This document shows positions 2,823-47,973 of a stretch of DNA of 64,000 nucleotides, one piece after another (within the stretch, counting starts at the first letter, position 1; every line of letters starts with the position of its first letter). Origin of the DNA: Eutreptiella sp. 'Long Island Sound 2002' (Eukaryota; Protista; Euglenida). Below the pieces are notes generated by a model. That model made no database searches and was not told the origin of the DNA. It worked only from the letters and a program-made list of their open reading frames with translations. Where the stretch lies: NCBI GenBank assembly GCA_964036045.1, contig OZ038378.1, forward strand, positions 189,844,001 to 189,908,000, read 5' to 3'. The position numbers were made by a program, and so were the translations under genes.

Positions 2823-4054
2823 TTAATTCATTGTCTTTATCAAATTGTTCAGGTCAATGATAGCCCCTTTACCTTTGTTGCAATCCCACTGTACCCTGTA
2901 TTGTTGCTGTTGAGCCATTGTGCCTTTCTTCCACAGGCGCTGAAAGATTCCTGTTCCAGGGCCTGTCTCACGACATGCTGCACCCCCAGCAGGCTCTCCA
3001 AAGTCCTCATCCCATTCTTTTGCGCGTGGACGGGCGTGCTGCCCATTCGTGCAGCCACACCATGAGTACCCCAAAAGGGCATAAGGGCCACGTGTGAGCA
3101 AGAACTCCGCCGTGTACTCCGTGAAGGCTGCAGGAGATACACCCTCTCCACCATTCGGAATGTTGTACAGCTGCATTTTGTTCCAAGTCGCGGGCTTGGG
3201 CACACAAAGGGCCCGCAACGTCTGTTGGCACTGTTCTTTGTTCATCTTGGACAAGGTCTTCATGCCACCCCCATCCATCAGCTGCCAATAGAATCCCCCC
3301 ATGGCAACCACCTTTTGCGTCAGCTCTCGCATGCTTTGACGGTACGCTGCCACTTGTGATTTCATGCTCTCAGAGCTTGCGCCGGTGTCTTCAATGTAGT
3401 GGCTGTCCTCCTCGCTTGGGCCTCTCATGTCCATTTCATCATCCAGCCAACCCAGGCCAATGGGCTGAGGGCGCCCAGTCCCGGGATTCCTGTGGAGCAG
3501 GGTCTCGTTCGTAATCATGTATTCGCTGATGAACCATTCTCTGAAAGTTCGGCCTTCCACTGCACCTCCACGATGGTCGAAAATGTACTCTCCACATGGA
3601 TTCACCTCTCCACAATCACACTGCTCCTTGCAAGCACCATCCACGGGGTAGGCTGGGCCCCCACCTGGATGCTCTGGTGTTTGCTCCTGATCGTGGTAGA
3701 AGCCGGAGCACTTCGGATTGGGTGGTGCCCAATCGCACGCAGGCACATGATATGAGTTGTTGGACTGCGGTCCTTTGTAGTCCTTAAACTTGATAAACCA
3801 GGATGCGTACTTGGGATCGTCGAGCTTCTTTCGGACGCTGGAGTACCAATTGAGCCCCTTGATTGTGTTACGGTAGACCCAGACACGCGGCGCCTCTCCG
3901 GGAACTCCCGGCTCCGCCGCCAACACTGCTTTGGCATTCTTGGTCAGCAACTCCTGGGAATTCATCGGATGCGCATTCGCCCAGAGGGCCTTTGCGTTGC
4001 TCCAATCGTAAACTACAATCCCAAACTTGATGGCATGGCTCACGTCATGCATAC
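2823..4054 (-). CDS. Exon 2 of a secreted hypothetical protein, possibly a glycoside-hydrolase-like TIM barrel
   Basis: Long uninterrupted protein-like ORF (GIVVYDWSNAK, RVWVYRNTIKGLNWY, LGWLDD, LLTRGPYALLGYSW, VQWDC) ending in a stop. It begins after TGTCAG preceded by a pyrimidine tract (complement of the GGAG-rich 4081-4150). The function is inference. Confidence 0.85.
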
Positions 4055-5693
4055 CTGACATACGTGGAGCAACACATGCCAAGGAGGGAGGGAGGGAGGG
4101 AGGGGACGGACGGAGGGAGGGAGGGATGGAGAGATTGGATGGAAGGGGGTGGTTTTGGCCGGTGTGACCAGTCCCCACACGAACAGCTTGCTCTGCTCTG
4201 GCTCGGTATGTGTGCACCCTACTGTGCTTACGCTGAAAAATTCAAACTGGATTCTGCAATAACTCTAATGTCTATAATTGTACAACATCGCCTTGATGTG
4301 GTGTCCTGGATAAAATACATTCATCTGTCATGGGGTGGGGTTCGCTACACCAAACTGTATACCTCAAAATAATCCTGACGACGCGCTAATCAATTTGAGT
4401 TACACCACAGGGCAGACAAACTTTGCAAAAATGCTTTACTTTGCTGTTCATTTTCAAAGGAGTACAAGCATTTGGCACCACCCTGTTGTAGAAAACCCCC
4501 CACACCTTTGTCTCAAGACAACTAGAACCCAACGATTGACGGAAACAATGCCCAGTGTTGATCGGACAAGGGTGTTGTGTGTGGGCTACAGTGTGTATGG
4601 TCTGCACACAGATGGGGTGCATTACTCTGAAACCAGGGGGCAAAATGTGTCACAAATGCCATCAACGCCCAAATGTCCTGGCAGTACACACATGATAGCC
4701 ATCTCGCAGTCCAGTACCAAGATACCACACAACACAGAACACGAAAATTTTCAATGTTCAACAACAAGAGATGGGAAAATCCATGGTGCAAAGCAGTTGA
4801 TGGAGACAGCGCCCACATGTTGTTTGGACATGGGGGGTGTTTGGCGTAATACGCTGATGGCGGTCACCCTGGGCATGACACTCAAAGCGGAGAGGAGTAG
4901 CATGGCTACATAACCCTTGCTGCACCATGGTACCCAAAATGACTTATCGATTTTAGGATTTGTTGCTATCTTGTTGCCATTGTTTGCCATTGTACGTGCA
5001 GACCGCATGCATCAGTGCTTTGCACTTTGCATGGCCTTGCAAGCGCATGCTAAAACAAGCCCCACAACAAGCCCCCCCAGGTTCGGCACAGTCAAAGCAG
5101 TGAGCAGGACTGATGCTCTGACCCTTGAAGCCACCACGCCCTGTGAATGTAAACAACCAGGTTGCCGATTTTCCTTAGCTGCAATGCACTGGGAGTGCTG
5201 TGGCTACATATCCTCTGCCATACCGGGTCTCAAGAGTGTGGATGTGGGACAATCTACAAAACCCGTATCAGGTCCCCAAAGCCGGAAGGAATGACGTGGC
5301 CACAAAACCCTTGCTGTATCAGGATTTGGAAAGAAGTGACGTGGCTACATGAACCCTTTGCACGGAAGCGTACACTGTGCCCCACATTCCCCTCATTCTT
5401 ATGGCATGGATGGCATCAGTAGAATTGACCTCACTTTCCACCCAAGAAGCTTTGCCACCTTGTGAAAAAACCCCCGAAAGTATGGTTCAAGCAGTTGCCG
5501 AGACTTTGCGCCACTTGCGCACTGCTTGCCCAACATGTTGGTTGGTGCTGTCCCGCCGCCCAGCCTCCGTCATTTCTGCCCCCACTGTCCCTTCATGCCT
5601 GCTGTCCGTTCCCCTCTCCCTCTCTGCCGCTCCCTCTGGCATTCCCTTTCACTCACACCCCTTCACCACGATCTGTGACCACATGAAGCATAC
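4055..5693 (-). other. GT-AG spliceosomal intron, 1639 bp
   Basis: Donor AACTCAG|GTATGC at 5694/5693 and acceptor TGTCAG|GT at 4055/4054. Splicing joins ...YTCNNS-G-MHDVSHAIKFG in frame (phase 1). Confidence 0.82.
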
Positions 5694-5835
5694 CTGAGTT
5701 GTTGCACGTGTACAAAACCGTTGAGCGATACATGTCCCACGTTGGCTTCCACGTTGGCAAGCATGTCGTGCTCCCTGGCAAACACTGCGCAGCAACTGCC
5801 GGCAGCAGACACGTCAGCAACAGCAAGAACAGCAT
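5694..5835 (-). CDS. Exon 1 of the same gene: signal peptide plus N-terminus
   Basis: ATG at 5835; hydrophobic MLFLLLLTCLLPAVAA-Q signal peptide, then CLPTWKPTWDMYRSTVLYTCNNS, ending at a canonical donor. Confidence 0.82.
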
Positions 5836-5839
5836 AGAC

Positions 5840-5856
5840 CTGGAGTAGAAATGAGC
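5840..5856 (-). promoter_or_regulatory. Splice acceptor 4 nt upstream of the ATG (candidate spliced-leader trans-splice site or 5'UTR intron end)
   Basis: The minus strand reads CTCATTTCTACTCCAG|GTCT ATG. Confidence 0.45.
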
Positions 5857-6104
5857 CCGGAATCGACGGATTTACTGTTTATTTGGGGCTCGTTTGCGCC
5901 AAACTATTCGAACCATGGAGATTGCGCGTCCTTGCTATCTCAACACACCTCGCACCCGGATACTACATCTTGACAGCCAGGATTCCATTCTGTGAGGAAA
6001 TTGAATCCCCTCTAGAAGATTCGAAGATCGGCAAAATTCGGGCCTCGAGCCATCCTCTACATTGCCTCCTACGGTAGTGCTAGACTTGAGTCCAGCGGTA
6101 CAAA

Positions 6105-6202
6105 GACTACAAGACTTGTAGTCTAGTAGCACAAAGTCTGCCAGACTTGTACGGTACAACTCTACCTTATACTGTACTGGTAGACTAACAATCTACCAGT
6201 AC
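6105..6202. repeat. Cluster of three perfect inverted repeats
   Basis: GACTACAAG-A-CTTGTAGTC (6105-6123), AAGTCTG-C-CAGACTT (6134-6148) and GTACTGGTAGA-7nt-TCTACCAGTAC (6174-6202). Confidence 0.8.
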
Positions 6203-7239
6203 GAGACCGTTACTTTCATCAGTGGCCATCCTTTTGGTGTGACCATCAAGTCCAAAAATTAATCCAAAAGACAAAAAAACTCTTGTTGATGTATGTTTCA
6301 CACAACAAACACGCACACCGTCTGCAGGAAACCAGGCACTACAAACAGCAGGTTTCAGATCATTCAGTAATACATCCGTCTGAAGTGTGTCAGTGGTAAA
6401 GAGAGAATATATGACCCCGAACCCGCAGTCGGCGCTAAATGAACAAAACTTTCTGCCTGGAACTGCCAGCGATTAGGTCAATTTGTGGTTGGTGGTCAAC
6501 CGATGGCCCAAAGGGCTGTCCTGAGAGGGGGGGGATCTCGTTGTTAAAGAACAGACCTGCACCTGCAATATTCGACATAGTGTGTTACCGAAAAAATTCG
6601 GCACACAGGGCCCCTCGGCGCCACACACCACACTGTGCCACATATTTTGTGTGTGCTTCGTCTAGTACTCTCGACTGCTTCCTGATGTACTGCTGGCCCG
6701 CCTCGACCATTGGGAGTGCAATTGCATGAACACCGAAAAAACCTGACACCTGAAGGCGAAACAACAGCTGCTTGACTTGTTGGGTGATTGCAGAGAGCAC
6801 ACGGTCGTGGTGTGTGGCTGGCCACCAGAAGCACTGGGCCAATGAGAATATCAATATCGAAAATATTAATATCAAAGCCCATCCCAAGCAGCTGAAGTAA
6901 AGCGTTGTTGTGAGGAGCCACTGTCTCTGCCGGGGCCTGCTCCTGTCATTGGCACACAGGACGGTGATGCTAAGGAAGCGAGTCTGCACAGCGTGTGCAC
7001 AGCACATGTACAACACGCACTTTCAGGGAGAAGGTAGGGAACACAAAAAATATCGGGGTCTTTGTAAGCATTCTTGTCTCTCTATGGAACAGTGCAGTCC
7101 AAAAAAGATAGAAAAACCCCACATTGGATCCATCACTCTTTGCCCTGAGGTGCACCTTCATTGAAGTAGTGGGGTTCAGGGGGGGGGGGGGGCGGAAAAA
7201 AAATTCCTTGTTATGGCATACAGCGTCATTTTTGCAGGC

Positions 7240-7282
7240 AACCCCCGGGAGGGAGGGGGGGGGTACGAAAATTTTTCCTTGC
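7240..7282 (+). repeat. Dispersed G-tract repeat motif, copy 1 of 4
   Basis: ACCCCYGGAGGGGGGAGGGGGTAYGAAAAATTTT-like motif also at about 8786-8822, 17600-17715 and 18820-18915, all in the same orientation. Confidence 0.7.
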
Positions 7283-7599
7283 ACATATATCCAAAATTTC
7301 CATGAAATGTGGATGTTTCTAGCCGAATGGTCGGTTTATTGCATAGAAAGCAAACATGATAAGTGACAAACGGTGCACATTGATCTTTTGACACCATTGC
7401 TCCATCAATGTGAAGACTACGGCCCCAGCTCAACGTGCAAAGTGTGGTAACGAAGTCTCACCCTTCAACTGTGGTTAAGGAGGAGGGGCGTTGCTCCCTC
7501 GGTCAGAAGCCAGAAGCCCCAATACTACTTCTTTCCCCGTACCCCGTGGATCAAGCAACAACATGTCACACAATGGCTAAGTACTTGGTTGTCCCATGG

Positions 7600-7662
7600 T
7601 TGTGTGTGTGTGTGTGTGTGTGTGGGTGTGTTTGTATGTGTATGTGTATGTGGATGTGTGTG
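7600..7662. repeat. (TG)n / (TATGTG)n microsatellite
   Basis: Directly visible. Confidence 0.9.
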
Positions 7663-7871
7663 CCGCGGCACTCCGTGATGTTTGCACGCACATCGCTACC
7701 AAAATATGTGCCCATAAACCAAACATGATGTTCGTTTTGGGTTGTGTTTGCCTTCTGAGGAACATGGTACAATTCATATGAGGAGAGAGAAAAAAGATAA
7801 TTTGCAAAATCAAAAAAAATGCACCTCTTGGTGCCCTTCTTTGCAGGTGCCTTCTTTTGGTGGCTGGGTTT

Positions 7872-7958
7872 CTGCTGCTACCGCTGCTACTGTTGCGGAT
7901 GCTGGTACTGCTACTTGTAGTGCTCACTGAACTGCTGCCGCTGCTACTGCTACTTGTG
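7872..7958. repeat. Imperfect CTG/CTA trinucleotide microsatellite
   Basis: CTGCTGCTACCGCTGCTACTG... is directly visible. Confidence 0.75.
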
Positions 7959-8785
7959 CTACCTCCGCACACGGCAATTTCTCCCTGGATTCACCAACCG
8001 GTGCCACCCCGGTGCAAGGGGGGTTCATGGAAACCGTCCCCATACCGTCAACGTATCTCCAATGAACCTTCTCGTGTGCATGCCGCATCATGGGGTATTG
8101 GCCACACAAGGCATTGGCATTTGGCACACCAAGTGGCAGTGCTCTTGTGCACTTCCAATCGGCACTTAGGGCAAGAGCAATGCCATCGGCCCCTGGGCTT
8201 GTTGCAACCTCATCCTCCCCTTCAACTCTCCAGGAGGGGGCACATCATTATCGGCAAGCGGTGCAGGTGCAACAGCAGCCGAGAAAAACTGCGTCATTGG
8301 CAATTGGCGCTTTGCCTTCAATGGCGGAGCTATACTAGCCTTGTGTTTCTTGCCCTGGCAATGGGTGACAAATTGTTGTGTGCCCGCTCCCCACAAATGC
8401 AATTCCAACCATTCGTAGTGCGCTTTGCCCATGCAGCATCCAGTGAAGAAGAAAGCAAGTGAGTTGACATTTGCTGAGATCTAAAGTGGAAAGGAAGACG
8501 GGAGTCTTGGGGGCTTGGGATGCTAACCTTGGGTCCATACACTTCATGACCTATGCGCAATGCATACATCCTGTGAGAGGAAAGCAAGGAGCAAAATGGG
8601 ACAAGGGGCACGAGCATTGGCAGATTTTTGGGGAAGAACAAATCATCACATGCAATGTGCACAGAGGTGATCCAAGTACATTAACTAATTTGGTGCAACC
8701 ACTACCAAAATTGTACAATTTGTTGTCCAAGAGAAAAAAATTTCCAAATGCTACAATTTTAGTGCGACAGTTTTTTTTCGCGACC

Positions 8786-33567: not shown

Positions 33568-33772
33568 CCATGCAGTGGGATGTAATGCATAAGCCATAGG
33601 AGTGATCTAGCCATTTAGCTCTTCGTATGACACGTGATACATTCTGGTTGATTGAAAAACGCTATCACTTGCTCACAGTTTATGGGCGCAAGCCACTATT
33701 GTTCATGCTCCGCTTGCCGTGCCATTGACGAGATCTTCCAGTCTGCGTGTCATTGTCTAGAACTCCCTGTAG
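33568..33772 (+). repeat. 5' pseudo-LTR
   Basis: Matches 39218-39422 (offset 5650) with two mismatches seen. Confidence 0.93.
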
Positions 33773-33896
33773 TATCACACGTTTGACGGAGTAACACCGT
33801 CATACTACCTCAACTCCTCCAAGGCCACGACAAGTCTCGCCGCCTTCGTGTACTATTTACTATTTTTTGGTCCTCACTCGTTTGGTGAACGACACA

Positions 33897-35087
33897 ATGC
33901 CGGGAAAAGGTGACCACGCTTCGAAGAAATATGAGCCTACGGCGGACACGGTTTGCGGTTTTTGCGAGGGTAAAGGACACTTCATGTACCGATGCCCGGA
34001 GAGAGCGAAGCGTTGCAAAGACGTGAATTCCGACGGCACGTATAAGAAGCGGCAAACTTGCTTTAATTGTTTGGGACCTCACAAATTGGCACATTGCACA
34101 CAAGACCTCTATTGGTGGCGCATATCCAAAAATAAGAAAAAGTTCTTTGAGGCACTTGACAACGGCACGGAATTTGTTGGCATCGCCGCGTCGCCTACCC
34201 AACCTCCATCTATGCCGCCGCCCGCCCCAGTTACACCGTCCAAGTTTGATATCCATGTACGTGCGAAAACCTCATGGACCGATTCACGCTTGACTAGCTT
34301 TAAGCAAGATTTCGAAACTCAAGAGTATCAAAACACATTTGATGACCACGTCTTGGTTGTTCATGGTGTGCCGGAAAAGGAGGTTGGCAAATTGATGTGC
34401 CAAATTCGTGATGGCAAAGATGCGGATGGGGAATCATGGGATGATGTATCACGAAAAGCCATCCAAGTTGCTACCACTCCTTTTGTTGATGCCTCGTCTA
34501 CCTCGAGCTCTTTTGATCAACGGACCGAGGACCGATTCAAGGCTATCGAGAGCACCCAAGAGGAATTGAAAGGCCAAGTCTCGGACATCCGTTCGTCGGT
34601 TACAAGTTTGGAGAGGAAAATTGACACGAATCAACAATCCGTGAACTCAAAGTTGGACATGTTGATCAATAGTATGACCGGTTCTCCCGCAAGTCCGCCC
34701 GTCACCCCGAGCAAGGAAAAGCACAACACCGCCGGTAAAGCGACGGATTCATCGGCTTCATCGAGATCCCGAGACCGTATGTCCGTTGATGAGAACACTA
34801 ACGAAACACCTGCCCATTTGACTATCAACACCGGTGACAAGGCTTGGGCCGTTTGGGGTGTGGGTTCCACGTGCCATATGGATGAAATCCAAGTGTGTTC
34901 GTACGGCGAGGAGCGGGATGTCCCGGGCTATCTTGTACAACTATGCAAGCAAGGCACTTGTGTGGGCACACCATTCTTTGTAGAGTCTGGACATGTTTGC
35001 ACTGATAGAGAGAGTGCGGTACCTATCTTTGAACGTTCACGTGGCGCGAAACGCCAAACACGTGGAAGTAGCCGTCAACCCCGTTGA
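33897..35087 (+). CDS. PLE ORF1: zinc-knuckle, coiled-coil nucleic-acid-binding protein
   Basis: First ATG at 33897. CGFCEGKGHFMYRC (CX2CX4HX4C), CFNCLGPHKLAHC (CX2CX3HX4C) and heptad segment FKAIESTQEELKGQVSDIRSSVTSLERKI. Confidence 0.85.
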   Translation: MPGKGDHASKKYEPTADTVCGFCEGKGHFMYRCPERAKRCKDVNSDGTYKKRQTCFNCLGPHKLAHCTQDLYWWRISKNKKKFFEALDNGTEFVGIAASPTQPPSMPPPAPVTPSKFDIHVRAKTSWTDSRLTSFKQDFETQEYQNTFDDHVLVVHGVPEKEVGKLMCQIRDGKDADGESWDDVSRKAIQVATTPFVDASSTSSSFDQRTEDRFKAIESTQEELKGQVSDIRSSVTSLERKIDTNQQSVNSKLDMLINSMTGSPASPPVTPSKEKHNTAGKATDSSASSRSRDRMSVDENTNETPAHLTINTGDKAWAVWGVGSTCHMDEIQVCSYGEERDVPGYLVQLCKQGTCVGTPFFVESGHVCTDRESAVPIFERSRGAKRQTRGSSRQPR

Positions 35088-35088
35088 T

Positions 35089-37728
35089 ATGAATTCGGAA
35101 CCCGATTTGGATTTGGACTTCACTCTCCGTGAATCCCGAACCCGCACTAGACATGTGCGTCCGCCGCGTCGCTACTCCCCACCTATCATTGCTCAACGTG
35201 CTCCTCGGATTACTTCGGAGCCAAGTTCCACACCGCATGTACCTTCCTCATCAAACCATGTTTGGCGTTCTTCTGCGGTTGTTCGGGCACGCAATCGTTC
35301 CCGATCCAGCGCGATGACGGAGGCGTTACGGCGACCAAAACCGAAAAATTATTCTCGTGCTCCAAGGGCATACCGAGCGGAATGCCGCTTGAGACGATTC
35401 GGCCCACTCACGTCTCGCCCGCCCCCTGCTGAGCCGGCTCCATACATGGAACTTACCAGGATCAAAGGTCTACGGTGGTTGCATGCTTTACGAAAGGTTC
35501 ATGAATCACTCCCTCCTTTGGACACGCTCCATATGCTTCCCCAAGGGAACCAATCTGGCATTGCATCAACGATCATGTCCGTACAATCTCGTGTTTTTGA
35601 TTTAAGTACCAGCCTGTCCCCTTCGGCACTACGTGCCTTTCGTTCCGATGCATTGACGTCCCTCGATGTGAATGTTACACCACACTCCAAGAACAACCGC
35701 GTCCCCGTGATGAATTTTAAGTCAAAAATTTTGTTGGAATGCATAAACTTGGTGACCAACCATCCTTTTCTCCATCGGTTGTGGGTTCAATTTCATCGGA
35801 GCGCTTCCAATCTTCATTGGTCAATGATTTCCGACCAAGAATGCCATACATTTTGTACCGAGACTTTGGGGTATGCAGCTAACCTCAAATCAGCTTGTAC
35901 CATCCATCCGTCCTGGTGGGAACCTAATGAACCATGGTGGCACACGTGGCAGCATCTCATTCAACCCGATGCGGTCTGGGGAGTCTCCGCCTCCAGTGTT
36001 GGGGCTAGTTTAGGTGCATTCGGCGGACCCACTTCCAATTTTGAGTTAAGCTACGGTGCGCTGCCACTCCACGAGGTGGTATCCTCGGCGCGCCGCATTG
36101 TCTACCTGGCACAACCCGGTGTAACAACCGATGAGTTCAGTAGCCTCTTGACTAGTTCCCAACATGTTGAGGTAATTATTCTCGGGGTGCCCCAGTGTGA
36201 TGAGCACTGGATGACTTTTGCAGCCCAGCTAACTCAAACAGGAATTGCGTTTTGCGCGTATGAAGAAAAACTGTCCCAATCCCAACCTTATGGGTCGTCG
36301 ACGCGATCACGCCACTCCTTGCGAAGCTTCCGAGCCCCATGCGTCTCCTGGTTTTTTATTACTCGAGATACATTGCATTCCACACGACAACCGAATGGTT
36401 TTGTGTTTCGCGCACCGCCGTTTGATATGCACCTTTATATCGCCTCGCTAAGCACGAGATCCAAGCATGGCCGTGGCACATGGTCCATGCCCCCAAAACA
36501 CTGCTACCAAACCGTGGGTAAAGGCCTTATAAAATGTATGTTCCTTGAATCACTACGCAGATTGCAAGTGGTGCGGCAGCACCTGTACTTGCGCGATACG
36601 AATTACCTCTCCAACTTGACAATTGGTCAAAAATTGTCGGCTCATTTAGATGAGATGCGTGCACTGCTAAAATACACCAACTACACATGGATCCGAAGGA
36701 TTATTGGTGTGTCTAAGGCATTGTATGCCCCCTTTGATAAAACACAGAGTGTTGTTTATGTAGTTTTTTCGCTGATTGATGGTACTGTGTATGTTGGGCG
36801 CACGGGGCGATCCATAGTCGAGAGGTTTATTGAGCATTTGAATGGCGGTATCCGTGCAGCATTCCATCTGCGCAGAGGGGAACCAGAATTTCTGGACGGG
36901 TTGGAGTTATACGCGGCCATGGCACGCCACGGCATCGAAAATTTTCTGATTCTACCATTGCAGGTATCTACCCCCGAGCGACTCCCATCTGTTGAGCGAA
37001 GATGGATAAAGTTTTTTGGAATGCATGATTACAACACTCGTGATGCCTCGCAGCCATGCCACTTGCGGTGGCGTTTCTTTAAGCGCATTCCGGCCTCCTC
37101 TGAGGTTCTTCACCGGCAGAGGGTGAAAACTACTGTAGGACAGCTGCTCAGTAATCACAGGAGAGTTAACATGTCGGTGCCAGCACTGCTCGATGTGATG
37201 TGTGAGTCTCAGTCCATGGTTACACGTGCCCATTGGATTGAACTGTGGCGTATTGTGAAACTAAAAATCCATCAACGCACAGGTGTGCATATACCGAGGG
37301 AACTGGCGATACCCTCTGCTGCGAGTAATGAACCCCCCCCCATGTCGCTGACGCATTTTGTTAAAAGCACCATCATGCAAGCGCCCCTGCCGCTCCCCCT
37401 GCGACATTATCTGTGTTCCGTGACACGCCTACAGGCTGTTGGTGGCAAACGTGTCCGTGATCTGTTATGCACAACCCGCATCAATGTACCATGGAAACGC
37501 CTGTGTCACATAGCTGACCAACGCTGTGGCTGTGCCCATGTGAGGGATGTTACCAAGGTGCAAGGGTGTGTGTGTACAAGACTGCATGCGGATTGGGTGA
37601 CGCTGTTTGGTCCGGATGCCACCATCCTTAAACAACATATGGGTAACAGAACCATCACACCCTGGCAGTGCGCCTTCTCTATCAGGATGATGTACAGTTT
37701 GAAACACTGCATACCCTCCCCACCGTGA
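35089..37728 (+). CDS. PLE ORF2, N-terminal part: unknown region plus GIY-YIG endonuclease
   Basis: ATG one base after the ORF1 stop. VVYVVFSLIDGTVYVGRTGRSIVERFIEH...ERRWI...YN at about 36751-37040, followed by a Cys cluster (RCGC..CVC). Confidence 0.85.
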   Translation: MNSEPDLDLDFTLRESRTRTRHVRPPRRYSPPIIAQRAPRITSEPSSTPHVPSSSNHVWRSSAVVRARNRSRSSAMTEALRRPKPKNYSRAPRAYRAECRLRRFGPLTSRPPPAEPAPYMELTRIKGLRWLHALRKVHESLPPLDTLHMLPQGNQSGIASTIMSVQSRVFDLSTSLSPSALRAFRSDALTSLDVNVTPHSKNNRVPVMNFKSKILLECINLVTNHPFLHRLWVQFHRSASNLHWSMISDQECHTFCTETLGYAANLKSACTIHPSWWEPNEPWWHTWQHLIQPDAVWGVSASSVGASLGAFGGPTSNFELSYGALPLHEVVSSARRIVYLAQPGVTTDEFSSLLTSSQHVEVIILGVPQCDEHWMTFAAQLTQTGIAFCAYEEKLSQSQPYGSSTRSRHSLRSFRAPCVSWFFITRDTLHSTRQPNGFVFRAPPFDMHLYIASLSTRSKHGRGTWSMPPKHCYQTVGKGLIKCMFLESLRRLQVVRQHLYLRDTNYLSNLTIGQKLSAHLDEMRALLKYTNYTWIRRIIGVSKALYAPFDKTQSVVYVVFSLIDGTVYVGRTGRSIVERFIEHLNGGIRAAFHLRRGEPEFLDGLELYAAMARHGIENFLILPLQVSTPERLPSVERRWIKFFGMHDYNTRDASQPCHLRWRFFKRIPASSEVLHRQRVKTTVGQLLSNHRRVNMSVPALLDVMCESQSMVTRAHWIELWRIVKLKIHQRTGVHIPRELAIPSAASNEPPPMSLTHFVKSTIMQAPLPLPLRHYLCSVTRLQAVGGKRVRDLLCTTRINVPWKRLCHIADQRCGCAHVRDVTKVQGCVCTRLHADWVTLFGPDATILKQHMGNRTITPWQCAFSIRMMYSLKHCIPSPP

Positions 37729-39059
37729 AGGCTGCCAAGCAAGTCGCGCATGATATGCTACTACAGTCGGCCACTGAGGCTGGCCTTGCCCCATTCCTGC
37801 AACGGGGTCCGTCGTTTGGTGTCCCATGCTCTTTTGCTTTCGTTAAAAACAAGAGCAATGAGTTGATTGATGAACTTAAGTGGCGCATACTCTTCTCCCA
37901 TTTTCACCACCCACTGAAAAAATATGGACAGCGTGTCGGGAGAGCCCTAACTCTGTTAATAAAAGCTGTGGTACAAGTGTTCGATACCTGGGCCATACTC
38001 AACACAGGTGATGTGCGTGAGTTCGCCGGTCGTGTGGAGTCCTCCCTGTCAAAACTGTACCCTGATGGTATCCCTCCGAAGAAACGTCCACATTTATTTG
38101 AACTCGACGTGAAGGAAATGTTCCCTCGCCTTCCTAGGGACGGCGTGATCTCTGCGATTACAAGCCTGGCTTCGGAACTCACCCTGTTCCTGAAAACACA
38201 CCCCCCCCCCGAGGGCACGAACCTTCCCCCACGGCTGCGTGTTGGCAAATCGGGCCTGATATTCAGCATTCACAAACGCAACCGGAAACTGGACAAATTG
38301 GGTAAGGGTTATGCATCTGAGTTTCATATTTTAACGATGCAAGAAGTGATTAATTATTTGAAGTTTGACATTTACACTAATGATCTTTTCGTCATTGGAA
38401 GCCGGATCGCACGACAACGCCGCGGAGTTGCAATTGGTGGTCCATGCTCTGCACAGTGTGCGCAGCTCTATTGCCTCTACCACGAAGTGCAGTTTCGCCA
38501 AAACAAAGGGAAGGGCTGTCGTTTAATGAAACGCCTACCGACAGGTTGCATGCCCATTGATCCATATAGGTATATGGATAACATTGTGGGTGTTATTTGT
38601 GGGTCTGTGTCACTGTCCCGCATCCAGAAAGCACTGCACGCTGTCTATGGGTTAGAGCTCCAAAAAGAAGGGGAGGGAAGCGTCTTGCCTTCCTTGGAGG
38701 CGATCCTGTCACTGAACGCACTCAGCGGATCGGTGGGACTAAGATTGAAACCCAAAGTGGATTACACCCTCCCCCCTCACAAACAGTTGTCACGCTTTCC
38801 TGATAAGGACGCCCTGCAATCACAACGATCTGCCAAAAGCATTGCTGTGCAACTAGGGATGAAATCCTCAGATTATAGTTCTTCGCTGGATGACATACAG
38901 TGTAATCTGTCTGCATGCATACAGGAGTTTGAGGCGAAGCGCTACCCAGGATCCTGGTGGCGGGCCCCTCTACTCGTCGGGGTCACACGTAGTGGACGGT
39001 GCCAGAATTCCGACATATTGCGTGTCCTGTACCCACCATGTATTGCACCCACAGACTGA
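37668..39059 (+). CDS. PLE reverse transcriptase (frameshifted continuation of ORF2)
   Basis: LFELDVKEMFPRLP, RQRRGVAIGGPCS and YRYMDN motifs. Lies in the -1 frame relative to ORF2, with an overlap window at 37647-37728. Confidence 0.88.
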   Translation: MRLLYQDDVQFETLHTLPTVKAAKQVAHDMLLQSATEAGLAPFLQRGPSFGVPCSFAFVKNKSNELIDELKWRILFSHFHHPLKKYGQRVGRALTLLIKAVVQVFDTWAILNTGDVREFAGRVESSLSKLYPDGIPPKKRPHLFELDVKEMFPRLPRDGVISAITSLASELTLFLKTHPPPEGTNLPPRLRVGKSGLIFSIHKRNRKLDKLGKGYASEFHILTMQEVINYLKFDIYTNDLFVIGSRIARQRRGVAIGGPCSAQCAQLYCLYHEVQFRQNKGKGCRLMKRLPTGCMPIDPYRYMDNIVGVICGSVSLSRIQKALHAVYGLELQKEGEGSVLPSLEAILSLNALSGSVGLRLKPKVDYTLPPHKQLSRFPDKDALQSQRSAKSIAVQLGMKSSDYSSSLDDIQCNLSACIQEFEAKRYPGSWWRAPLLVGVTRSGRCQNSDILRVLYPPCIAPTD

Positions 39060-39217
39060 GTCATCCTTCACCTCCTCTCCACCTTGTTGTTCCCCCCCCC
39101 CCCCCACACGTGTACACCCGGGAAACTCGGTGCATGCCAAGTGTGATCCACAACCCCATGTCTCTGGGGTGCTCATGCAATGCGGGACGAACCACAGGGC
39201 CACCACTTATGTGGGGG

Positions 39218-39422
39218 CCATGCAGTGGGATGTAATGCATAAGCCATAGGAGTGATCTAGCCATTTAGCTCTTTGTATGACACGTGATACATTCTGGTTG
39301 ATTGAAAAACGCTATCACTTGCTCACAGTTTATGGGCGCAAGCCACTATTGTTCATGCTCCGCTTGCCGTGCCATTGACGAGATCTTCCAGTCTGCGTGT
39401 CATTGTCTAGAACTCCATGTAG
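39218..39422 (+). repeat. 3' terminal repeat of the PLE
   Basis: Direct repeat of 33568-33772. Confidence 0.93.
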
Positions 39423-39772
39423 CACTCAGTGTGCCCTGGGGCATCAATGGGCACACTTAGACGTCAAAGATGGGGCCGGAAAGCCCACACAGGCGGCATA
39501 ATATCACCAATATACCCAAAACTCACCAAGTGCACACTTGCATACACAGTCACATGCGTCTACCTCCCAAAAAATCATAACTTGGTGCCACCGTGGCTGT
39601 TTTACAAACCGTTTTTGTTTGAAAGCCCTTTTTGTGTAGAATACAGCGATGTTTTTCAATACGAGTCATGAGTAATGGGTTTTGAAACATTTTGCAATGT
39701 TTCATTTCGACTTGATAAAATTTTCCCAAAATTTTCTCTGATTTCTAGGGGGGAATTTTTTTCTCCCGGGAC

Positions 39773-40078
39773 GTAACTTGGCGCCACCGGTGAGTTTTGT
39801 GGCGTTTTTTTTTGGAGAATGTCCTTTGAAACATGTCCTAAAAGGATATCTCTGGCCGTGCTAGGCCGTCTTTTGCTCACTTTGAGCCATTTTGGTTGGG
39901 GGTTGGGGCTCTCAATGTTTGACCGCCGCAGTGGCACACAGTATTTTCGGGGGTGCAACGAAAGTGCCGGGGGGGTAACTTGGCACCACCGCTGAGTTTT
40001 GTGGCGCTTTTTTTTTTGAGAATGTAACTTGAAACATGTACTAAAAGGATATGCCTGGCCGTGGGAGGCCGTCTCTTG
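39773..40078 (+). repeat. Two diverged copies of a ~100-bp unit
   Basis: GTAACTTGGC.CCACC..TGAGTTTTGTGGCG...GAAACATGT.CTAAAAGGATAT at about 39773 and 39975. Confidence 0.8.
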
Positions 40079-41089
40079 AGAGAGAGTTGCAATCAACTTC
40101 TCATGGTCTGTGACCACAGCGCATTTGCGAGAAGATCTCCTCATAATGCTGAGAAATTTGACAGAAAAGGCAAAAAAACGGTTGTTCAAATATTGCAATT
40201 TAAAGCGGCACTTTGGCTCCAATTGACCTAGGCGAGCATTCATTTAATGCGGATTGTAATGCCAATGTAGCACAAAAGCTCGGAATCAAAAAACATGGCA
40301 TTGGCATGAAGAAATGTCCAAAATTTGAACGGCAATTTTCGGATTTTGCCAGATATGGGCCAAAGTGCCACAAACACCCAGGGCAGAAATTTTTGTACAG
40401 TGCATTGCGACAAAAATTCTGATGCTCCCAGCTATAAAACAGCTCTCAAGCTACAGATCCGGCAAAAAAAATCTACATTTGGTGGTTCCCTGCTTAAGAT
40501 ATTCCCAAAATTTGAACGAACCGGCCAAAAAGCGCCGCGCGTAACCATTATCACACCCGCTGGTAATTTGCATCTTGCATACCTCTAGTGACGACTAAGG
40601 GAAAACTCCGCGACTTAGATTACCCCGCCTGTTGGACTGGCGCGCGCCGATGCGCGCCGAAATCTGACTGCGCGCCAGTCCCCCCAAACGGAAAAAAGGG
40701 TTACGGCGGGGCTCGAACTGCCGCAATGCTCCCTCCTACGAACTAGGCACCCTTCTTTACCCATTGGACCATCGCTCCGCCTGTGACAATGTCCGAAAAT
40801 ATCATTTACGGATTTGGTCCCTCCGACGAAATTTTTTAAAAAAAACCAAGCCACCGGCCGAAGCCGGCGGCTGCTGGTTTTTCCCAGCCATGCGCCGAGG
40901 TTGTCGACGGCCCCTGGGCCCCTCGGGCACCTCGGTTGAGTCACAAACTAGACCACTTTTGGTCACATTGTGCACAATCATGGGCCCATTTCCATCATTG
41001 AGCCTAATGGTGAAGGGAGGGGCCAAAGAGGTGCTTGGGCCAAAACTTTGCCCCAAAGGTGAGTTTTCCTTGGAACTTTTTTGAGTTAG

Positions 41090-41760
41090 GAAGACCTTCT
41101 TAGAACAAAAAGAACACACCCTATCCGTCACAGCCCTAGGGATCGTCAGACCTTAGCCTAAGGATGGAGGGGTAGAAAAGTGACCCTCTTTTGAGTGGCT
41201 ACTTGTTGGTGCCAACAAGTGTTTGGCAACACAAAGTGAGGATAGTGTGCACCTTTGGAAAGCTTGTTTTCCATATTGACGCCCCTTTCCATAACAAGGA
41301 AAGGTATCAAACGAAAATGGTGACCAAGTAAGGTTGGCACTTGTTTGTAGTTTGTAGTTGTTAGTACTTTGGTGTAGCTCGGAGTGGCCACTTTTTTAGG
41401 TGGTTCGTTGTTCCCAAAGTGCGCCACTCCAAGACCTCCAAGTACTTTTGTGTGGGCTTTAGTGTGAGCCTTCCTTGATCACCGGTGCCTTTTGGTGCTA
41501 CAAAGACCGCTTGAACACAAAAAGAACACCCCATATCACACCTTACCACAAGGGTACATCTTACCACAAGAGTGGGGGGGTAGAAAAGTGGCACCCTAGA
41601 GTACCAACTCCAGAGTGCTACATCCTACAATAAAAAGTGTTTGGGTGCATAAGGAAAGGATAGCTTGGAAAGCTTGTAGGTTGATGTTAAAGCCCCGTGA
41701 GATATTATGCAAAGATATTGAAGTGCAATGGTAACCAATATAGGTTGACACTAACTTGTA
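41090..41760 (+). repeat. Degenerate duplication with a period of about 410 bp
   Basis: AAAAAGAACAC, GGGGTAGAAAAGTG, TTGGAAAGCTTGT and GGTTG.CACT each recur about 408-412 bp apart. Confidence 0.6.
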
Positions 41761-44427: not shown

Positions 44428-47400
44428 ATGATGGAAGGACTCGAAAGCGTGGTAGCAGAGCAGGATGCTCTTGCTCACCTCAACTCACAACTTAAGTCCA
44501 GAGCACAACCTTGTCCCTTGAAAGAGGAATTCATGTACACGCCTCAAAAGGAAGTGGACCCGGACGAGCTACCGGATATCCAACCGCCAATGGCTCTTCA
44601 TTTTGATGACGGTAATACTCCTCAAGCCATTCCATTTCAAGCATTGGGTGAAGAAGAAATTCAACAACATGATCCTATGACTTTGTTGAATAGTCATGAT
44701 GAGGCTATTGAAGCTTTGGGCTCGGTGATTGATCAATTGGTTGGGTTTACCACTTCCCTTGCTCAACACAATCATGGGGAAGTTGGTAAGGCATTTGAGG
44801 ATCTTTCGCAACATCGTCGAGTGCTTGAACGGTTGAGGCTCAAGATCCGTCGACTCGTTGATCATGAGGAAAATACACAAGAGTATATGGTTGGTTTCGA
44901 CAATGTGTTGCAAAACTACATCCTTCCCACCTTGAAAAAATATTCCGCCGACATTCCGACGTTGCTTTCATTCAAGAAGATCTCTGAGAGCAAGCTGTCA
45001 ACCATTGAAGCCCATTTGACGTCCATGGAGAATTCTTTGAAGGATTGGAGTATGGAGATTTCCACGACAAAAAGTACGAGTGAATATGTTTCCCAACAAC
45101 ATGATCTTTTGTCCTCTTCGGTTTTGCAACTTCAACAACGAGTTGATCAAGTACAACAAAGTATGGGTCCTCTTTCAACATCCATGGGTGAAATTCGGTC
45201 ACAAATAAATTCATTGCAATCTCTCTCTTCTTCCGTGCATACGCTTGGCTTGCGAATGGATTCCATTGAGGGAAATATCAATTCTCGGTTTTCTGACATG
45301 GAGTCTTCCGTTAAGAGTAGTTTTGCCACGGAGCTCGGCTCGATGGAGAGTCGACTAAGGAATGAATTTCAATCCCAATTTGCTTCGTTTGATTTTGCAA
45401 GGTTTCAACAACATATTGAAGTTACGAATTTGAAACTGTCGTCGTTTGAAGAACAATTGGTGAATGTTGGTTATTTGCATTCTTTTGCATTGCTTTCATC
45501 GCGATTGGAGAGGAATGAAAAATTCCTCAATGAACTACAACCTCAAATAGCGATGACTCAAGTGTGGAGTAGGCGTTTAGACACTTTTGGTGCTCAATTG
45601 GACGAATTTCGAAGAATACAAGCCTCTCTTCCTACTCTTAATGTGAAGGTTAACGAGCTTGAGTCACAAATGAGTAGTGTTTTGTCGTGGAATTCTCGTT
45701 TGGGTGCCGTTGAGGGAGATGTTATTGGTTTCAAGTCGCATTTGGAATTAATTGACAATACACCTCCGCCGCCGCCCTTACCTTCGAAGGATGGGGCCTC
45801 TTCCACCGCCTTTGATTCATTACACAGACGTGTATCGGCGTTGGAATCCCGTCTCAATCCTTTGCATGATTCTTTTTTGCAGTGCACTTCTCGTTTACAT
45901 GCATTGCAATCTTCAATAGAGAGTCACAAGGAAGTATCTATTCGATCAATGGAGCAAATTCAAGAAAAAAATTCGAAACTGGAGATTTCCCATGGAGGTA
46001 TGCGGAGCGAGTTCGAGGTTGTTGTGGGAAAATTAGGCGTCTTGACAGCCCGAGTGGAAGAATTCAATGGGGAAGCGTTTTTGCGACGCTTTCCCATAAA
46101 TGAGATCGCCCGCCCTCAATTGGATTCACTTGCTCAAACAGCATTGGATGCCTTACATTCTTGCGAGGCTAAAGTACAATTTGCTTTGGAGAATTTTATT
46201 GTATCTCCCGAGGCATTCCAATCCATGTTTGAGGGCTGTTTTTCACACCCCCGTTCGTCCTTTTGTGGCGAAGTGAGCGATCTCTTTGTTAATCGCATTT
46301 GCGAATCCCTTTCCACCTTCCAACCTGTGCCTACTATCCTTTCTCGCCTTACTAAGGTCGAAGAAGAAGTGAGTGCATGGGCCGAATGGAAAGGAGATGA
46401 AACAATTCCACCCGATAAGACTGTTGAGGTATCCCACACTCCCTCTTCCTCCTCTGCATATCATGGTTCATTGGTAGAACACGAGAAAAAGGAAGCACCA
46501 CATTTGGCGGGGGGTGGGGAGACAAGGCCATCGGTGTCTGAGCCTCTGGCCGGTTGTGGATTGCCTTCCCATAAACTGCCGCCTCAATTCCTGGATTCAC
46601 AATTTTTGCGCATTCATCCGGTCTTTGAAGCTATGGCCACCGGTAAGATGGAATTATTTCGACGCGACCCCATTCGGGACGTGCCGGTTGAGAAGATTTT
46701 CTTGGACCGCTGGTCTTTTGCATCTTTTGTAATTAATGCTTCCAAGGCTAGCTTAGGGCAAGACGCTGTCCGTGATTATGTTAAAAGGAATCCAGAGGCC
46801 GCCCCCCTGATTAATGAGGTTGACCTAAAGCAAGGCCCCGAACCCAAGGACATCCTCTGGTCTTCCATTTCTCGTGATTGGTATTTGTTGGATAATGACA
46901 CAAAGAAAGACATTAAGGATAAGTTGAAACGTCCTACTTGGAAATTGGAGGATCCTGGACACCCACCCACTTGGCCTTCTTTCAAGCGGGAATGGGTCCT
47001 ATTCGCGGCTTATTGGAAGCCGCGTGTCCCGGAGGTAATCATGACCCATACACTTCTTTTCTCCTTGCCAGAGGCCAAAAAGGAATTGTATGGGGCCCTG
47101 CACAAGCATTTGGGCTGGGATTATGATCATATCTGGGATGATCTGGTGATTAGAGGCTCTGATCAGGAGGATCGTGGAGATTTGGGTGATCTATGGCTAT
47201 CCAAACAGCCACCAAAAGAGAAAACTGTGGATGGGCACACACAATGGGTCACTATCTGGTGTCTGCATGGCCAGCGTGCATCCCCTGTTACCTCTGAGCG
47301 GGCACGTGACGTTTTTGTGCAAGCGCTCGTGAATCATGGGTCGTACGAACAGGAAATGAATGAGGTCTACCGCATTCAGCGGCAGACCGGCAAAGAATTG

Positions 47401-47973
47401 GATTGGTCAATGATTCATCGTGTTGTTCTCTGGGAAATGATCTGGCGTGAACAGGCTTTTAAGGAGAAGCTCAGGGCACAGACTTTGGCGAAAGGTGGTT
47501 CTGTGCCGTTGCAAGTGGCACCTGGGGTGGGGTGCACCCACTGTCGACCCCAGGACCATGTTGCCGTCAACTGCAGGGCTGCAGGAGCACCTCCTGGTAA
47601 AGGTAAAGGTGGCCCGACTATTCCCAAGGGGAGAGGTAAAGGATCTTCGGGGTCACTGCTACCCCCAGGGTGCGATGCCTGGTCGGAGCTTAAAAGGAAA
47701 GCTTTTGATTCCCTGGTAGCTAGTTTGGCTGAGAATCTTACTGCAGGTCACTGTGGGTGGTTGGGATCTCCAGACCACAGGGCCCCACAGTGTCCATCTC
47801 AGAAGTCACTGTCTAAGCCAGGTAACCCCAAGGCGTCCGCCGGACCCCAGCCTGAGGCTGGACCCCGTGCCAAGCCGTCTCCAAATGATGGTGGAGGATT
47901 GTCCCCTAAGCCCCCCTCCCAGAGTGGAGATGGGGGGAGGGGGTGGCAAGGGAAACGGCAAAGGCAAGGGTAA
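44428..47973 (+). CDS. Large Gag-like protein
   Basis: 1181 codons; long heptad-rich N-terminal half; zinc knuckle CTHCRPQDHVAVNC plus an eroded second knuckle; G/K-rich tail. Confidence 0.8.
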   Translation: MMEGLESVVAEQDALAHLNSQLKSRAQPCPLKEEFMYTPQKEVDPDELPDIQPPMALHFDDGNTPQAIPFQALGEEEIQQHDPMTLLNSHDEAIEALGSVIDQLVGFTTSLAQHNHGEVGKAFEDLSQHRRVLERLRLKIRRLVDHEENTQEYMVGFDNVLQNYILPTLKKYSADIPTLLSFKKISESKLSTIEAHLTSMENSLKDWSMEISTTKSTSEYVSQQHDLLSSSVLQLQQRVDQVQQSMGPLSTSMGEIRSQINSLQSLSSSVHTLGLRMDSIEGNINSRFSDMESSVKSSFATELGSMESRLRNEFQSQFASFDFARFQQHIEVTNLKLSSFEEQLVNVGYLHSFALLSSRLERNEKFLNELQPQIAMTQVWSRRLDTFGAQLDEFRRIQASLPTLNVKVNELESQMSSVLSWNSRLGAVEGDVIGFKSHLELIDNTPPPPPLPSKDGASSTAFDSLHRRVSALESRLNPLHDSFLQCTSRLHALQSSIESHKEVSIRSMEQIQEKNSKLEISHGGMRSEFEVVVGKLGVLTARVEEFNGEAFLRRFPINEIARPQLDSLAQTALDALHSCEAKVQFALENFIVSPEAFQSMFEGCFSHPRSSFCGEVSDLFVNRICESLSTFQPVPTILSRLTKVEEEVSAWAEWKGDETIPPDKTVEVSHTPSSSSAYHGSLVEHEKKEAPHLAGGGETRPSVSEPLAGCGLPSHKLPPQFLDSQFLRIHPVFEAMATGKMELFRRDPIRDVPVEKIFLDRWSFASFVINASKASLGQDAVRDYVKRNPEAAPLINEVDLKQGPEPKDILWSSISRDWYLLDNDTKKDIKDKLKRPTWKLEDPGHPPTWPSFKREWVLFAAYWKPRVPEVIMTHTLLFSLPEAKKELYGALHKHLGWDYDHIWDDLVIRGSDQEDRGDLGDLWLSKQPPKEKTVDGHTQWVTIWCLHGQRASPVTSERARDVFVQALVNHGSYEQEMNEVYRIQRQTGKELDWSMIHRVVLWEMIWREQAFKEKLRAQTLAKGGSVPLQVAPGVGCTHCRPQDHVAVNCRAAGAPPGKGKGGPTIPKGRGKGSSGSLLPPGCDAWSELKRKAFDSLVASLAENLTAGHCGWLGSPDHRAPQCPSQKSLSKPGNPKASAGPQPEAGPRAKPSPNDGGGLSPKPPSQSGDGGRGWQGKRQRQG

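Follow-up and report, generated by a model that had tools for sequence, protein, structure and literature searches.

The 64,000-nt stretch of the Eutreptiella sp. 'Long Island Sound 2002' genome analysed here (contig OZ038378.1, positions 189,844,001 to 189,908,000; the whole stretch is called the window below) contains at positions 33568–39422 what is very probably one defective copy of a young, multi-copy Penelope-like element (PLE) with two open reading frames (ORFs), a member of the Naiad/Chlamys group and of the Chlamys type, in a euglenid genome. Among mobile elements, PLEs are the nearest relatives of telomerase, and how widely they occur outside animals is still being worked out. An earlier note on the window had taken the combination of a separate ORF1 with an N-terminal endonuclease (EN) and a reverse transcriptase (RT) for an unrecognised architecture. 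Craig et al. 2021 (PMC8557442), who define Naiad and Chlamys, describe an upstream zf-CCHC ORF for Chlamys-2_cBra of Chara braunii, and the two-ORF, endonuclease-first layout is therefore already catalogued. What is new here is the euglenid host and some of the details.

Layout of the element and its genomic copies

In the window the element consists of three long frames on the plus strand between two direct repeats, the upstream one a pseudo long terminal repeat (pLTR). Its parts are as follows (UTR, untranslated region).

33568..33772, plus strand: 5' pLTR, a duplicate of the final 205 nt of the element, 99% identical to 39218-39422
33773..33896, plus strand: 5' untranslated stretch from the pLTR to the ORF1 ATG, read directly from the sequence
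33897..35087, plus strand: ORF1, 396 aa; the open frame is 33867-35087 and the actual ATG is at 33897
33954-33995 and 34059-34097, plus strand: CCHC-type knuckles of ORF1 (sequence motifs)
about 34509-34682, plus strand: coiled coil of ORF1, between a middle domain and a conserved C-terminal domain
35085..35091, plus strand: TGA-T-ATG, that is, the ORF1 stop, one base and the in-frame ORF2 ATG (Met33 of the long frame)
34993..37728, plus strand: ORF2 part A, frame 1; out-of-frame sequence beyond 37669
about 35710-36492, plus strand: conserved N-domain of part A, which also has a basic N-terminus; a helical linker comes next
about 36745-37050, plus strand: GIY-YIG endonuclease in part A
37525-37533 (CGC) and 37564-37581 (GCVCTR), plus strand: CxC linker in part A
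37668..37671: junction of a 268-bp deletion private to the window copy, with GT microhomology; the DKN motif region is lost
37668..39059, plus strand: ORF2 part B, frame 3, the RT
37842- (KNKS), 37878- (K.R..S) and 37938- (GRxLT), plus strand: RT motifs of part B
38094-38126, plus strand: RT motif A, LFELDVKEMFP; the long A-B insert comes next
38415-38456 (motif B) and 38568-38591 (motif C, RYMDN), plus strand: RT motifs, with the thumb after them
39060..39422, plus strand: 3' UTR with a C-run at about 39096-39110 and the 3' pLTR (39218-39422) at its end

The genome is available as a 2.28-Gb assembly of chromosome-sized contigs, and the element was found in it as at least 59 BLAST pieces spread over many contigs, a copy number that excludes a chance origin. 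Twelve copies were retrieved, 10 of them full-length and 95–99% identical. Every full-length copy retrieved has 268 extra bases at window position 37669/37670. In the intact copies this segment encodes ...TYTFLMVDKNSGRTWVMC..., and its product includes the invariant DKN motif (...MVDKNSGRTWVMC...); it is therefore coding sequence. The possibility that it is an intron was considered and rejected, as it encodes the invariant motif, lacks GT..AG ends and shifts the frame when it is absent. With the segment present, ORF2 is one unbroken frame of 1444 aa in three copies (L032, L033 and L040), and in L033 both ORF1 and ORF2 are intact. The window copy has lost the segment in a deletion with a 2-bp GT microhomology, which removed DKN and split ORF2 into two frames. 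It is a dead deletion derivative of a young multi-copy family and, without the 268 bp in ORF2, is unable to make the endonuclease-fused RT.

An intact element is about 6.1 kb long and is composed, in order, of the 205-bp pLTR, ORF1, ORF2 and a 3' UTR closing with the same 205 bp. The order within intact ORF2 is N-domain, GIY-YIG nuclease, CxC linker, DKN, a TERT-like RT with a long A-B insert, and thumb. The earlier note had described ORF2 as an N-terminal part of unknown sequence followed by GIY-YIG and a PLE-type RT, and this order is borne out by the intact copies; the single frame it assumed is not present in the window, where the endonuclease (34993–37728, frame 1) and the RT (37668–39059, frame 3) are separated. 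In the same way, the near-identical repeats and long intact ORFs that it read as a sign of recent activity hold for the repeats (99%) and, as to the ORFs, for other members of the family, the window copy having its ORF2 split.

The two 205-bp direct repeats (33568–33772 and 39218–39422) enclose ORF1 and ORF2 as the earlier note had stated. Across copies the 5' edge of the upstream repeat lies at −47, 1, 3, 4, 4, 4, 5 and 21 relative to the window copy, and the 3' edge of the element is exact in all of them (...CTCCCTGTAG). With its ragged 5' edge and exact 3' end, the repeat thus behaves as a pseudo-LTR and not as a true LTR. Most 5' edges fall close to position 4, which would agree with an RNA start within the upstream repeat, as has been shown for Penelope and Chlamys-3_cRei (PMC8557442). 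In one copy the 5' pLTR is preceded by a further 47 bases of 3' UTR sequence (L031:954-1000), which represent either a longer partial tandem or the 30–40-bp 'tail' described for PLE insertions. Many of the BLAST pieces contain the 3' part of the element only (for example, query 4834–5855 and 5035–5855), the pattern expected of target-primed reverse transcription, and pseudo-LTRs together with frequent 5' truncation are a PLE trait. Neither a poly(A) nor a microsatellite tail is seen at the 3' end of the element. Rfam finds no hammerhead ribozyme (E ≤ 1), nor is there a CUGANGA...GAAA core on either strand; absence of the hammerhead is the rule in Naiad and Chlamys (PMC8557442).

A sister family is present in an assembly of the same organism (L043), with an ORF2 that is 51% identical to that of the window family. 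At least 15 of its copies, with near-identical scores, have an intact ORF1 frame of 430 codons and an intact ORF2 frame of 1460 codons (examples are C21:23281546-23287034, C20:23949470-23954958 and C27:5576755-5582242), and the family looks currently active.

The two proteins of the element

A HMMER scan of 1.84 billion representative proteins with the endonuclease–RT part of ORF2 gave 462 matches, and 13 long homologues cover everything from GIY-YIG to the RT end, arranged in the same order. In intact copies the endonuclease (aa 587–690) is N-terminal to the RT (aa 1000–1440) within the one 1444-aa ORF. The Pfam GIY-YIG match of the frame-1 protein is weak and covers aa 587–627; the catalytic R, H, E and N of the core are conserved in the aligned relatives, and a GIY-YIG endonuclease is a mark of the endonuclease-positive PLE groups. 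No conserved Cys/His pattern occurs in or before the GIY-YIG core in the 9–17 relatives aligned there, so that both the CCHH and the CX2-5CxxC finger of Naiads are absent. In the linker between endonuclease and RT, alignment A1 has an invariant C-x-C at C286 and C288, with G-H-(V/I)-x-x-R after it; the C-x-C is present across 15–20 homologues. Before the RT core, D-K is invariant and the following N nearly so across 15–20 homologues, in agreement with the DK(G/N/A) motif; it is this DKN that is deleted in the window copy.

The RT alignment contains KNKS, K-x-R-x-x-x-S and G-R-x-L-T, and motifs 1, 2, 2a, A and B are present across 15–20 homologues. About 100 aa separate the D of motif A from motif B (Q-x-x-G-x-P-x-G-G-x-x-S-A), a region that is modelled as a helix and strands. 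The AlphaFold2 (AF2) model of the RT (aa 835–1444 of an intact copy, 20 aligned sequences) has a pLDDT of 91.6 and a pTM of 0.88. When it was compared with the PDB using Foldseek, the top 16 matches were all TERT (E 2e-10 to 6e-6), from Candida, human, Tetrahymena, yeast and Tribolium, with about 600 aligned columns; DRT2, LINE-1 ORF2p and group II intron RTs rank below them. Against the ESM Atlas clusters the model gives TM scores of 0.63–0.77 over 450–552 residues, the matching clusters comprising GIY-YIG + RVT_1 clusters, a streptophyte cluster and a rotifer cluster, and the matching animal clusters carry the PLE-associated Pfam families HTH_animal, DUF8422 and GIY-YIG. The RT is thus placed in the PLE/TERT clade by fold, not by tree. 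TERTs are its best solved structural matches and share the long A-B insert; unlike TERT, the euglenid gene has no TEN or RBD by Pfam, and it is multi-copy, mobile and fused to an endonuclease.

Upstream of the endonuclease, the N-domain (ORF2 aa 245–500) is conserved in at least seven relatives and is about 300 aa in size. It has no Pfam match, and none of its members matches a Pfam methyltransferase. A model of aa 240–720 is of moderate quality (pLDDT 73.5), and its Foldseek matches in the N-domain have E-values of 0.014–0.1, the best being to a cap-specific adenosine methyltransferase. No glycine-rich S-adenosylmethionine (SAM) loop is seen. The domain may have a class-I methyltransferase-like fold, a tentative suggestion to which we give slightly less than even weight; that it is an active methyltransferase seems decidedly improbable.

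ORF1 has two zinc knuckles, C-X2-C-X4-H-X4-C at aa 20–33 and C-X2-C-X3-H-X4-C at aa 55–67, and a heptad-rich stretch at about aa 205–262, where the Pfam matches are weak and of the coiled-coil type. Three copies of aa 195–275 were modelled as an in-register parallel bundle with a score of 0.80, the best of 3 controls scoring 0.00; at least 71% of contacts are common to the runs, and the pLDDT of the partner is 77 or higher. The mark used for this model is reached by 21 of 30 proteins solved as one-chain pairs and by none of 23 solved as single chains (in eukaryotes, 17 of 29 and none of 30), a calibration made with two copies, not three. The model supports self-association of the coiled coil, short of proof, and the two knuckles and the coiled coil noted earlier in ORF1 are both there, the motifs being read directly and the trimer model passing its controls. 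By Pfam, ORF1 has no sequence similarity to LINE ORF1 families, and a language-model search of the Atlas with ORF1 and the ORF2 N-terminus gave no usable match. A 148-aa frame on the minus strand opposite the start of ORF1 (window 33810–34256) is unsupported and probably spurious.

ORF1 is an integral part of the element and not a one-off insertion. It lies between the pLTR and ORF2 in every full-length copy, which was one of the checks proposed with the first reading of the window, and it is kept in the sister family, whose upstream ORF aligns with it from end to end at 37% identity (E 3e-98), both knuckles and the C-terminal domain being included. When the two ORF1s were made into a profile, more than 1000 first-look candidates came up in the genome, at least 17 of them intact ORF1s of the sister family; the endonuclease–RT profile gives 8854. 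In the 15 or more intact copies of the sister family, the ORF2 frame (1460 aa) is found 1.6 kb downstream of the intact ORF1 on the same strand. Two more divergent ORF1-like frames are followed by endonuclease–RT frames (C19:22410956 and C22:21341394), the linkage of these loci being taken from their coordinates.

More distant families also have upstream frames. In family D (L047:2492-3949 and 4001-8743), in which ORF2 is ~25% identical, a 485-aa upstream ORF has one CCHC knuckle and a heptad stretch. Homology of this ORF to ORF1 was considered and rejected: the alignment is limited to the knuckle and the hhalign probability is below 1%. The two-ORF architecture is shared with family D, which need not mean common ancestry of the upstream ORFs. 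In a further family (P0161; L046:885-2921) a 678-aa ORF about 1 kb upstream is unrelated to ORF1.

Assignment to Chlamys and competing readings

The hallmarks that match Chlamys are the GIY-YIG without CCHH, the CxC linker, DKN, the long A-B insert, the pseudo-LTRs with a ragged 5' edge, the 5' truncation and the lack of a hammerhead. The A-B region corresponds in Chlamys to the position of an IFD (insertion in fingers domain). Chlamys elements usually lack the hammerhead, are 3.3–8.2 kb long and vary in their accessory domains. Their reported hosts are green algae, Selaginella and Physarum (PMC8557442) and Ectocarpus (PMC12477816), whereas the host here belongs to Discoba. Motif C of the euglenid element is D-N.

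The most similar single element is Chlamys-2_cBra, which has an N-terminal GIY-YIG and then the RT in its main ORF, a separate upstream gag-like CCHC ORF and a genome-wide spread. It differs in having a streptophyte host and a canonical 3' hammerhead, none being found in the euglenid element. Compared by description, the coiled coil and the conserved C-terminal domain of the euglenid ORF1 are additional, as is the N-domain of ~300 aa in ORF2. Naiads share the permuted endonuclease–CxC–RT order, the pseudo-LTRs and the lack of a hammerhead. They keep, however, the CCHH in GIY-YIG and the CX2-5CxxC finger upstream of it and have a DKA motif, none of which is present in the euglenid element, and they are single-ORF elements of 3.4–4.4 kb from animal hosts (PMC8557442). 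Chlamys is preferred over Naiad because the two fingers are lacking, this being the published distinction between the groups. The Athena/Terminon and Coprina elements are also multi-ORF PLEs, their ORF1 can carry a coiled coil (PMC8557442) and a rotifer cluster matches the RT model with a TM of 0.67, but they are endonuclease-minus and located at chromosome ends, whereas the euglenid element, with its complete GIY-YIG, is scattered across many chromosomes.

Several observations weigh against the assignment to a Chlamys-type PLE, or against parts of it. It was made from motifs and fold, not phylogeny; the tree of relatives, from which named PLE references are absent, describes their internal structure only. 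Pfam RVT_1 fails to match the RT, whose motifs in the frame-3 protein of the window were recognised by eye, and a search of the PDB with a sequence profile gave weak RT matches (E 0.03–0.3) with no TERT among them. Motif C is R-(F/Y)-x-D-N (R-Y-M-D-N at 38568–38591 in the window; D451/N452 of alignment A2) and not D-D, which is unexpected for an active RT. D-N occurs in all rows of a supported 16-row clade containing the euglenid families, and D-D only in its 4-row sister clade. Many identical intact copies are found among the D-N families, so either an RT with D-N can be active or the missing carboxylate is provided by another residue. Insertion into (CA)n or (C)n microsatellites, a trait of many Chlamys families, though not all, is not seen, the flanks of 11 copies being unrelated unique sequence, and the copy flanks, judged by eye, show no clear and consistent target-site duplication. 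The evidence for RNA of the window family is five short contigs in one estuary metatranscriptome, with possible carry-over of DNA, and the mode of ORF2 translation and the ends of the RNA are what we infer rather than observe.

The strongest competitor keeps the element among PLEs but removes it from Chlamys. Here the euglenid families would be a separate deep lineage, sister to or outside Chlamys plus Naiad, with the extra N-domain, D-N and the coiled-coil ORF1 as its own traits. Every close relative is either from the same organism or from metagenome contigs, the D-N families form a supported clade distinct from the D-D rows, Pfam gives no match to the conserved N-domain (about 300 aa), and the host supergroup is unlike that of every reported Chlamys. 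Against this, the families have every diagnostic Chlamys feature that could be tested (endonuclease without CCHH, CxC, DK, long A-B insert, pLTRs and no hammerhead), and Chlamys elements have been described as varied in structure, N-terminal extensions and accessory domains included (PMC8557442). We regard a separate lineage of this kind as unlikely. Only slightly less unlikely is the broader proposal that the euglenid families are a distinct deep branch of N-terminal-endonuclease PLEs in Discoba, marked by a methyltransferase-like domain, a D-N motif C in families that evidently continue to move, and a LINE-1-like trimeric ORF1 that is independent of LINEs. As far as we have found, the three marker traits (N-domain fold, D-N and trimeric ORF1) are undescribed for PLEs.

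There is very little to be said for a LINE-like (non-LTR) element that acquired a GIY-YIG nuclease and inherited its ORF1 from LINEs. The bicistronic layout with a short spacer, the knuckles and coiled coil of ORF1, and the presence of LINE-1 ORF2p and R2 among the weaker fold matches point in that direction, but LINE-1 and R2 are below all TERTs, whose E-values are three to five orders of magnitude better than that of any LINE RT. Animal PLE clusters can be superposed with the RT model, the CxC and DKN motifs, which are specific to PLEs, show no variation, the nuclease is GIY-YIG with no APE or REL nuclease found, and there is no poly(A) or microsatellite tail. The likeness to LINE-1 is considerable in organisation: both would have a bicistronic RNA, a short spacer between the ORFs and an ORF1 with nucleic-acid-binding modules and a coiled coil, here predicted to be trimeric, and in both target-primed reverse transcription goes with frequent 5'-truncated copies. 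The two differ in RT clade (TERT-like here), in nuclease (GIY-YIG, not APE) and in the lack of a poly(A) tail here, and convergence is the best reading of the resemblance to LINE-1 ORF1p/ORF2p.

An LTR-type or DIRS-type retrotransposon, with the 205-bp repeats as true LTRs, would account for the direct terminal repeats of equal length in most copies and for a gag-like ORF1 upstream of a pol-like ORF2. The Pfam scan found no integrase, RNase H or recombinase, just as the earlier note had reported; neither a protease nor, specifically, a tyrosine recombinase was found, and the RT is TERT-like and not retroviral-like. The 5' edge of the repeat is not the exact end of an LTR, one copy being 47 bp longer, and the abundant 5'-truncated copies indicate target-primed reverse transcription, so that for practical purposes this reading is refuted. 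The idea of ORF1 as a gene of host or foreign origin, captured a single time in the window copy, can be dismissed: nothing favours it except the lack of database homologues outside the host organism, and ORF1 is in the same place in all full-length copies, is conserved in the sister family, has its many candidates across the genome and recurs in same-strand pairs with ORF2 in several families.

Expression, relatives and host range

With the element taken as a Chlamys-type PLE, established PLE biology suggests that transcription would run from the upstream pLTR to the end of the downstream pLTR, and a full-length cDNA would therefore recreate both repeats. The knuckles of ORF1p would bind RNA and its coiled coil would form a parallel trimer, giving a chaperone-like protein of the LINE-1 ORF1p type. 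ORF2 may be translated from the same bicistronic RNA by termination–reinitiation at UGAUAUG; an alternative specific to euglenids would be translation after spliced-leader trans-splicing. The spacer between ORF1 and ORF2 is one base in the window family, about 90 nt in the sister family and about 51 nt in family D, and conservation with the sister family does not extend to the 45 aa at the start of the long frame, upstream of the ORF2 ATG. The GIY-YIG nuclease would then nick the chromosome, the RT would copy the RNA from the freed 3'-OH, and incomplete copying would leave the many 5'-truncated copies. In assembled contigs of sequencing runs, the joint at which the sequence 'goes back' is the terminal repeat.

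Related families are transcribed, as shown by transcriptome-derived proteins of Eutreptiella gymnastica. The sister family is 96% identical to one of these (UniRef A0A7S4CSN5), and another relative shares a cluster with a second transcript protein of E. gymnastica. Among 30 relatives, two carry a taxon, E. gymnastica in each case. In comparison with P0158, A0A7S4CSN5 (P0151) lacks motif A and the long insert, the stretch from after GRxLT to motif B; what was sampled there as expressed is therefore itself a copy with an internal deletion. Near-identical DNA is present in estuary metagenomes, and ENA assembly ERZ25074135 contains a protein 99% identical to the ORF2 of the window family together with the sister family. 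Word-index protein searches with the endonuclease–RT part, its profile and ORF1 returned proteins of the same organism only and say little about distribution.

Elsewhere in the window, short dispersed direct repeats with ~200 bp spacing, each with a T-run (CCCGGG..GTGAGTTTTGTGGCG..TTTTTTTTT), are located downstream of the element at 39765–40078 and 41034–41537 and are probably another small repeat family. A 1181-aa open frame on the plus strand at 44428–47973 has weak Pfam matches of the coiled-coil type (Occludin_ELL, E 4e-6, below the cut-off) and is probably part of another repeat or of a coiled-coil gene.

Euglenids are not mentioned by Craig et al. 2021 (PMC8557442), and a 2025 paper on Ectocarpus, in which Chlamys is reported from brown algae, describes TSAR as a supergroup new to PLEs (PMC12477816). 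Our literature search, made in a limited library, found no report of PLEs in euglenids, an absence that is provisional. Because Pfam RVT_1 misses them, genome annotation can readily take PLEs of this type for LTR elements or leave them without a class. A large, diverse and apparently active population of Chlamys-type elements in a euglenid, with thousands of first-look candidates in the genome, would add Discoba to the range of PLEs, and supports the view that PLEs with an N-terminal endonuclease are ancient and widespread. The recurring ORF1–ORF2 layout is a second, richer case in which a LINE-like organisation with two genes is combined with a TERT-like RT.

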